A stretch of 64,000 nt of DNA from Oopsacas minuta (taxonomy: Eukaryota; Animalia; Porifera), in the NCBI GenBank assembly GCA_024704765.1, contig JAKMXF010000133.1, forward strand, positions 496,001-560,000, read 5' to 3'. The translations under genes and the position numbers were made by a program. This document shows, piece by piece, positions 43,301 through 48,172 of the stretch; the stretch's first letter is position 1; every line of letters begins with the position of its first letter. The notes under the pieces were generated by a model that was not told where the DNA came from, did not search any database, and saw only the letters and a program-made list of their open reading frames with translations.

Positions 43301-46300
43301 TAAACTATAGATACTGTTAGTTTCCTTTCTTTGTTTAGCCTAAGTTTGTTTCTTTGTTTATTCTAAGTTCCCTTTCTTGTTTATTCTATACCTTTTTATT
43401 TATTACTATTTTCTTGTCTAACTCGCAAGATATTTACTATTTGGTTTGGAGGGCAGGAAAATCGATTATATACAGTAAACGCAAAGACGTGCACTGTACT
43501 TCTAATTCCGAACCTAATGATCTTAATTATAAATAGTCCCATTCATTTTAACACAATCCACATTCGGATAAGACTTCATTAAATTTTATTTCCCGAAGAG
43601 GTACGTCTTATCCGTGTTCTTCTGTATTAACCCTATTCTCTGTAATTGTCAATTCCTTTTACTTTCTTTAGTCAGAAATCCTTGATGAAGCAGAAGCAAT
43701 GGTTAGACTTTCACATCCTAATATAGTCAAATTATTAGGAGTCTGTTTCACAGATCCAATGCTACTCATCATGGAGTTATGTCATCTCGGTCCTGTCAAC
43801 GTATATCTACAGAACCATCCGTATGTCTGAATTAATACTTGCCTATTTCTCTAGTTTTATGAATTATATCGATTAGAATGTATCCTTTTTCACAGATGCT
43901 TAACGTCATCACACAAGTCGCCGAGGTAAATAATTATTTTCAAAATTACTTTTCTTATAGCACAGCATTTACTTGTCATAATTTAGGGAATGAGATACTT
44001 GGAAAGTATTAAATTTGTACATCGTGATCTTGCTGCAAGAAATGTATTAATGGTAGATGAAACTAAGGTTAAAATCAGTGACTTTGGCATGTCACGGGCT
44101 CTCGGCATTGGATCAGATTACTATAAAGTAAGTTTATTTCTATGTATTACACTATATTATCAATAGATAACATTATAATTATATATGCGGAATTCTCTTT
44201 GCAATAACAAGTTTGGTATTAAAGATAATTTTAGGTAATATGAACGGAGTTCTTCTATTCCAATAAATTCCATCATATCCGTCGATCTTTTCCTCCAGTG
44301 TATGTGTCATGTTGCGATACTTCACAAATTTGTCCTCTGTTGTAATAATCCAAGAGAATTGCTTCATAAAGTCTGTATCTTCTTCACTATCCTCTGCTTT
44401 CGAGTACACCCAATTGTCATGTAACTCTCCGAACCTATTCACTCCTGTCTGTGCTGCCTCCACGGAAATATGTACTCTGACCTCACCCTTACCTGGCCCC
44501 ATGTCATGTAGCCTAGAGAATGCTACACCTCCTGGATAGTTATGTTTGGATACATACAGGAAACATATACTTATCACAAAACTTATCAACAAACTTCCTA
44601 TGCAAGTTATTCTCATTATTAGCCCTGTAGTCTCTTTTATATTTTGTATATAATCTACAGCTCTACCTGCTGCAGCATTGAATAGAGGTACTGTGTAGAT
44701 AATGAAGCGTAGCTCTTTATGCGGAAGGAATGAGAATAGGAAAATGAATAATAACGCAGGGAATAGCAATTTAATGCATCTTATATCGTAATAACAACTC
44801 AATATGGACAATGGAAGAGCGATTAATATCATTCTAGGTAGAGCTGAGTAGAAATACCATAAGAACGGAGAAGTTCCCCATTGAGAGCTCTTGTTAAGGA
44901 CAGTATTATACCAAAGCACTTCTCCTTCAGGCCACACCCATCTATCCCAGAAATAGGAGTCTATTAGTATAGTGGAAGTAATTGCTATAATTCCTCCAAC
45001 AAACGACCATTTTAATACATTCCTTAGCTCCATCTGTTTGGTAACTAACGTGTATAGAATCAATACTCCTAATAGCAAGACTAACTCACCTCTGAACACC
45101 AGTACACAGAATAGTGTAGATATAACCAGGAGTACTGAGTTACCATATATCCAACCTGAGAATGCTAGCTGACATAGAACCAATGCAAATGAGTTAGGTA
45201 AAGTACGACTGATATAGAAGAGGTAGTGGAATTGACATGCAGTGATTATCAACATCCATATCGCTGTGTTATTTCCAAAATGTTTAGCAATACCACTGAC
45301 ATACAAATACAATGCTAATAGGTTACCAAATCCCAACATACATCTCACATAATATTGTAGGTAAGGCTTTGGTATATGAAATTGACTCACTAGTATTGTT
45401 TGTGCCCATAGTATCAGAGGTCCTATGAAACTGCGTGGCACCACCCCTGGGAATTCTAAATGATCGAATGCCTCTAAATCTGACCAACTATAAAAGATCA
45501 AATCATGCACTGCTTGTATGTTGAAACTCTCTTCAACCTTGTTGTAGGGACAAACATAAATGTAGATTACACAAATCCAGGCTAATAATACAAACCACGA
45601 TTTATACATACGAGGAATTCCTTTTTGTCATATCTGCAAGCTTTATACGAGTTATCTGATATACCAGTTTATTCTCTAGTAACAATGTTAATGCATTAAA
45701 TTAGCTTAATTATATATTCAGACTTGCACATTTCCCAACATATAATGGCTAATAATATGATTATTGAAGAAATGGCTTCGGTAGACATGAGTAATCAAGC
45801 TAGAATACTAGCTCAGTTCAAAAGTGAAGATGGACATCTTGTTGGTGTTCCCTTTGATCTTCCAGAGGAGATGTCAGTCAGACAATTGAACCAGACATGT
45901 AACGGTTTGCTTGGAGAAGATGATGACCAGATATACACGTTCTATATTGAAGGAGAAGAAGTAAGAGAAACATTAAGTAAAACTCTGAACTCACTTCAGA
46001 CACGAGACAGTGAGAATATTCTAGAAATACTCTACATTCCACAAACCACATTCAGAGTACAGGCTGTAACAAGATGTTCTGCATCAATGGGTGGTCATAC
46101 AGAAGCTGTTATAACTGTAGCATTCTCTCCTGATGGTACCCGACTAGCCTCTGGTTCAGGAGATAGTACAGTACGTTTCTGGGACATACAAACACAAACT
46201 CCAGAGTTCACTTGTAAAGGTCATAACCATTGGATTCTTGTAATCAGCTGGTCGCCTGATGGACGTAAAATCGCTTCTGCTTGTAAACGTGGACAAATCT

Positions 46301-48172: not shown

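Follow-up and report, generated by a model that had tools for sequence, protein, structure and literature searches.

Gene content and layout of the locus

The stretch of DNA analysed here (the window, 64,000 nucleotides from the sponge Oopsacas minuta) contains the exons of a Syk-like kinase gene on the forward strand, and the introns of this gene harbor three further genes, i.e., a TIL/Spondin gene in an earlier intron and, in a later one, the intronless genes ALG12 and NLE1 placed head to head. The features of the locus are as follows (window positions, strand in brackets):

37396..39069 (+): exons at the 5' end of the Syk-like gene, bounds approximate; they include the start codon (37396) and three SH2-like segments
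40315..40424 (+): host N-lobe exon, from GxGxxG to VAVK, ending ...VPNRK|gt; read from the sequence
40818..43310 (+): TIL/Spondin gene (Pfam TIL and Spond_N), nested in host intron 40425-43671
43672..43820 (+): host kinase exon A, PF07714 positions 47-95, ending ...YLQNH in phase 2
43877..43925 (+): host kinase exon B, frame and length in agreement with Syk proteins
43987..44127 (+): host kinase exon C, with HRD, DFG and the activation-loop YYK; PF07714 positions 114-157
44128..47443 (+): host intron of 3316 nt, GT...AG, phase 0
44133..44138 (-): AATAAA in ALG12 orientation, 41 nt past the ALG12 stop, directly next to the host donor in antisense
44179..45609 (-): ALG12, intronless single ORF of 476 aa plus stop, PF03901 E 2e-53
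45610..45744 (no strand): ALG12/NLE1 head-to-head spacer of 135 nt, presumed bidirectional promoter
45665..45677 (no strand): conserved block CAGTTTATTCTCT in the spacer, A/T-rich and TATA-like on the ALG12 strand; candidate core promoter element
45745..47211 (+): NLE1 (Notchless/Rsa4), intronless single ORF of 488 aa plus stop, matching human NLE1
47212..47443 (+): NLE1 3' region followed by the host polypyrimidine tract and acceptor; CATAAA at +87
47444..47584 (+): host kinase exon D, ending ...KPFK; PF07714 positions 164-206
47645..47757 (+): host kinase exon E, ending in phase 2, collinear with Syk proteins
47992..48172 (+): host last exon, stop codon at 48170-48172; read from the sequence

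An earlier note on this DNA had proposed that the kinase breaks off at 44127 and resumes at 47444, within its activation loop. Both positions hold, with TAC TAT AAA|gtaagt at the former and ctag|GCT AGC GAG at the latter, and the break does fall in the activation loop because PF07714 positions 114-157 (exon C) and 164-206 (exon D) flank the intron. The ALG12 and NLE1 ORFs both lie wholly within 44128-47443, between two exons of one host. The description of this intron as nearly filled was also correct, as the two coding sequences and the spacer make up 91% of it, and the proposed distances were reproduced (51 nt from the ALG12 stop to the donor, 135 nt from start to start, and 232 nt from the NLE1 stop to the acceptor). 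Together with the TIL/Spondin gene in the earlier intron, one signalling gene hosts three genes, as had been suggested. An Rfam search returned no match inside 44128-47443, and, in line with animal DNA, bacterial promoters and terminators were not enriched in a scan for them. The sole Rfam match in the 64-kb window was a tRNA at 26729-26801 on the minus strand (63.6 bits).

Identity and copy number of host and guests

The kinase model of the host was compared with other proteins exon by exon. All kinase subdomains are present a single time each, in the right order and reading frame, and the kinase is closest to Syk and carries the activation-loop YY of the Syk/ZAP70 family; the YYK activation-loop motif and WYAPEC are likewise found in vertebrate SYK/ZAP70. 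The lamprey SYK-like protein (P0183) and a second Syk-like protein (P0185) are collinear with the host exons, the break falling precisely at YYK|A, and the lamprey protein is also the best full-length match of exon D (70% identity). In the 5' part of the gene, SH2 domains were recovered with Pfam (E 9e-18 and 2e-12), and tblastn with Syk proteins delimited three SH2-like segments (37423-37704, 37870-38340, and 38567-39075). Vertebrate SYK and ZAP70 have two SH2 domains, whereas the sponge host has three such segments, as do its relatives, and it was for this reason filed as Syk-like rather than as a canonical Syk. Elsewhere in the window, two complete genes for protein kinases of the Ser/Thr type were observed (683-1366 and 24384-24995, both on the plus strand), 22-25% identical to Syk proteins.

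The identities that the earlier note had assigned to the two guests were borne out by domain and full-length matches. The minus-strand ORF is, by its sequence, ALG12, a GT22 mannosyltransferase whose activity is predicted: it carries the GT22 domain, is closest to ALG12 and not to ALG9 or the PIG enzymes, and matches PDB 9s6t over residues 7-474 with E 9e-109, as against only 7e-9 for ALG9. Its named relatives, at 40-46% identity, are all Dol-P-Man:Man7GlcNAc2-PP-Dol alpha-1,6-mannosyltransferases. The plus-strand ORF combines the N-terminal ubiquitin-like NLE domain (PF08154, E 7e-14) with the WD40 repeats of a propeller (E 7e-72) and is similar over its full length to human NLE1 (8fl0_NJ, E 2e-202, residues 15-485 of 485) and to yeast Rsa4 (E 4e-141), as expected of a member of the NLE1/Rsa4 family. 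Of the labels in that note, 'essential' suits NLE1/Rsa4, whereas ALG12 is dispensable in yeast.

Copy number was assessed over the whole O. minuta assembly (61,460,524 bases in 365 contigs). ALG12 is present once, the only other GT22-like match in the genome being 27% identical, and the NLE domain likewise occurs in a single copy. As each guest is the only copy, both are working genes and not spare retrocopies.

Conservation in glass sponges and age of the intron

A search with ALG12 recovered six related loci (L001-L005 and L009) from five other assemblies in ENA (ERZ25069837, ERZ25071281, ERZ25766962, ERZ25072740, and ERZ20067936), the depth of conservation among them being gauged from sequence divergence alone. 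The earlier note had called for a synteny check in other sponges; when it was run, the ALG12-NLE1-Syk layout proved to be kept in all six, each with the same order of SH2 exons, TIL/Spondin gene, kinase exon, ALG12, NLE1, kinase exon, and a NatA subunit gene. In the window, the last of these is a multi-exon gene for a NatA auxiliary subunit (NAA15-like, with TPR) that begins at 48705 on the plus strand, 533 nt past the kinase stop, and it is syntenic in all related loci. Two of the loci (L003 and L004, ERZ25072740) are near-identical along their whole length and lie on two contigs (680 kb and 1.07 Mb) of one sample; they are probably haplotypes or the result of a recent large duplication.

In L001-L005, the orthologues of exons C and D have their GT and AG at equal positions and in phase 0, the intron between them measures 3135-3684 nt, and the TIL/Spondin gene occupies the same place as in the window. 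Exon D differs from its counterparts in these loci by 19-24 nt, all of them synonymous, such that the protein is 100% identical; exon C differs by 20-32 nt with 0-2 amino-acid changes (96-100% identical). This near-silent change indicates that purifying selection is strong on either side of the intron. For the remaining parts of the locus, identity to the counterparts in L001-L005 was 79-89% for the N-lobe exon, 56-59% for the last exon, 79-88% for NLE1, and only 61-68% for ALG12; in the search that recovered the related assemblies, the ALG12 matches had 61-69% identity. Exon A is continuous in the window, whereas in L001-L005 it is split by an additional intron (about 630 nt in L001, about 60-70 nt in L002-L005) that separates ...KLLG from VCFTDP, which suggests that O. 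minuta has lost an intron.

These data bear directly on whether the two kinase halves belong together. The earlier note had itself named what would count against its reading, namely that the halves are pseudogene pieces, that they meet at a misassembly joint, or that the C-lobe exons belong to another kinase, and we consider this set of explanations hardly credible. What speaks for it is that searches of protein collections and metagenome contigs yielded no transcript evidence: the whole protein library, queried with exon D, held no full-length glass-sponge Syk and returned three genomic ORF fragments (100%) together with Syk-family proteins at no more than 70% identity; a word search with the same exon for junction-spanning fragments (up to 82 aa) found none and returned the same three genomic fragments; a degenerate DNA pattern of the spliced junction had 0 matches in metagenome contigs; and exact look-ups of the window ALG12 and NLE1, aimed at RNA-derived contigs, retrieved no record. 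Against it, misassembly and pseudogene halves are excluded because the layout, the splice sites, and the exon proteins are conserved in the related loci, i.e., in six loci of five independent assemblies, and because exon D carries silent changes and zero replacements and exon C at most two replacements. An origin of the halves from two different kinases is likewise excluded by the single, ordered, in-frame set of subdomains, by the collinear Syk alignment, and by the fact that exon D is unique in the O. minuta genome, where its next-best match is just 54% identical; the other kinases of the window are complete and of the Ser/Thr type, at 22-25% identity. From the conserved splice sites, the selection on the flanking exons, and the collinear alignment with Syk proteins, we infer that the host is a single Syk-like gene spliced across both guests.

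The hosting intron is probably older than its present content. In the lamprey SYK-like gene (L008), introns interrupt the C-lobe at YYK|A (phase 0, about 430 nt long), directly behind KPYP (phase 0), and within the codon that follows WNL (phase 2), and the sponge host shares all three positions and phases. As the lamprey intron lies at the equal position and in the same phase, the intron at YYK is part of an old Syk gene structure. Two other sponge introns are without a lamprey counterpart, i.e., K|SEIL (phase 0, 40425-43671, which holds the TIL/Spondin gene) and QVAE|GM. The guests point to a later arrival: ALG12 is multi-exon in Amphimedon (spanning 7.0 kb) and in Sycon (9.3 kb), and in both it is neighbored by unrelated genes, neither NLE1 nor a kinase, which argues that the guests entered the intron within the glass-sponge lineage. 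Most likely, they came in after the split from the sampled demosponge and calcareous lineages and before the five sampled glass-sponge genomes diverged, and most likely they also lost their introns, or never had any, within the glass-sponge lineage. They could have arrived by retroposition or, alternatively, through a rearrangement with later loss of introns. Overall, we are confident that this is a genuine and evolutionarily stable nested-gene locus, in which a single-copy Syk-like host (about 37396-48172) carries, within an old intron, the sole copies of ALG12 and NLE1 in the genome.

Expression of the packed genes and comparison with known systems

For such a locus to work, the host would be transcribed across the 3.3-kb intron that follows YYK, which would then be spliced out, and ALG12 (antisense to the host) and NLE1 (in host sense) would be transcribed away from each other, starting from a short promoter of their own that serves both. 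The spacer fits a bidirectional promoter belonging to the pair, being short (92-294 nt in the other loci) and containing, in CAGTTTATTCTCT, the only well-conserved non-coding block of the five-species alignment, a motif that is not common within the window. On the ALG12 side of the spacer (45610-45640, minus strand), an out-of-frame upstream ATG lies 22 nt ahead of the ALG12 start and opens a 9-codon uORF, just past a TTGCAG acceptor-like site.

At the other end of ALG12, the stop codon is separated from the host donor by 31-54 nt in all five species (window, L001, L002, L003, and L005). A polyadenylation hexamer abuts the donor in antisense in three of the five (AATAAA in the window and in L001, ATTAAA in L005); the site reads GATAAA in L002, and there is none in L003. 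Because the stop is so close to the donor and cleavage would be expected 10-30 nt past the hexamer, the ALG12 3' end probably overlaps kinase exon C in antisense as a short convergent overlap, with a poly(A) site that would probably lie opposite the DFG-YYK exon, between a few and about 25 nt into it. NLE1, in turn, would need to terminate within 232 nt, ahead of the host acceptor (the distance from its stop to the acceptor is 126-480 nt across loci), and host transcripts would have to pass over its terminator.

Whether this packing has consequences for the host can be weighed from the same features. The earlier note had suggested that the host transcript might use the NLE1 poly(A) signal and so give a kinase-dead 3xSH2 product that could act as a dominant negative; in a fuller form, host transcripts would often end at that site, or retain the intron, and thereby yield a functional SH2-only decoy isoform. 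Since NLE1 lies on the host strand, its terminator is indeed exposed to host transcripts, and read-through beyond 44127 would add just 12 codons before a stop. The presumed signal, however, was not found: the 232 nt after NLE1 in the window contain no AATAAA or ATTAAA, only the CATAAA, and of the five species only L001 and L005 have a canonical hexamer past NLE1, the window, L002, and L003 lacking one, which weakens the idea. The product would moreover be cut within the kinase fold, after DFG-YYK, and is unlikely to be stable, no short protein of this kind was among the protein-collection matches, and the strict conservation of the C-lobe exons implies that selection sees the full-length product. 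We therefore judge a decoy isoform of this kind very unlikely. A related reading takes the tight packing to be functional and not merely tolerated, with the ALG12 overlap and the NLE1 terminator coupling kinase expression to two constitutive genes through transcriptional interference, sense-antisense pairing, or intronic polyadenylation that gives an SH2-only product; such coupling seems very unlikely.

Coupling of NLE1 to the host at the RNA level would take the form of spliced-leader trans-splicing from the host pre-mRNA, or of transcripts from the internal promoter that run into exons D-F, as in F8B. A spliced leader has been reported in glass sponges, on only 4% of long reads (PMC10282587). 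Acceptor-like sites adjoin the start codon of NLE1 in L001-L003, where a TAG lies 1 nt ahead of the ATG, and that of ALG12 in L002-L003. They are absent in the window, however, where the AG nearest to the NLE1 start is 23 nt upstream, and L009 has none nearby; in addition, the head-to-head ALG12 and the conserved spacer block favor an internal promoter of the pair's own. We regard this coupling as unlikely, and our preferred reading remains that of a stable nested locus whose guests are expressed from their own promoter and whose intron is removed from the host transcript. So read, the locus gives no pointer to a new mechanism.

Nested pairs and multiple guests are known from human genes. Intron 22 of F8 holds the divergent pair F8A and F8B, which share an internal promoter; one is antisense and intronless, the other lies on the host strand, and F8B splices into the downstream exons of the host. 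The sponge locus resembles it in having a divergent pair within one host intron, one member antisense and one on the host strand, but differs in that NLE1 is complete in itself, stop codon included, whereas F8B uses host exons, and in that the sponge guests are conserved housekeeping genes, neither of which has a second copy in the genome. NF1 is, like the sponge host, a signalling gene with three intronic guests (OMG, EVI2A, and EVI2B). These all lie antisense in a single intron (27b), whereas two of the three sponge guests are on the host strand and the guests are spread over two introns.

The closest parallels come from glass sponges themselves. In Aphrocallistes vastus, 2432 nested genes (12.4%) were reported, many of them conserved, and the figure of only 83 in the O. 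minuta annotation was put down to technical reasons (PMC10282587). As here, the hexactinellid genome is compact, and the nested genes lack introns, are fully enclosed in introns of hosts with multiple exons, and are conserved from one glass sponge to another (PMC10282587). The Syk-like/ALG12/NLE1 locus with its activation-loop intron is not described in the A. vastus genome paper (PMC10282587), and the O. minuta genome paper mentions neither nesting nor Syk (PMC10280926). An automatic annotation that forbids nested genes would probably split this kinase into pieces. The locus shows how far gene packing can go, with an intron of a signalling kinase housing a factor for ribosome assembly and an enzyme of N-glycan assembly, each in its sole copy and one of the two (NLE1) on the host's strand, and it probably provides a dated example, with an intron as old as the Syk family and guests that came later, in the glass-sponge lineage. 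It is thus a new, well-conserved example of the nesting already documented as common in glass sponges.
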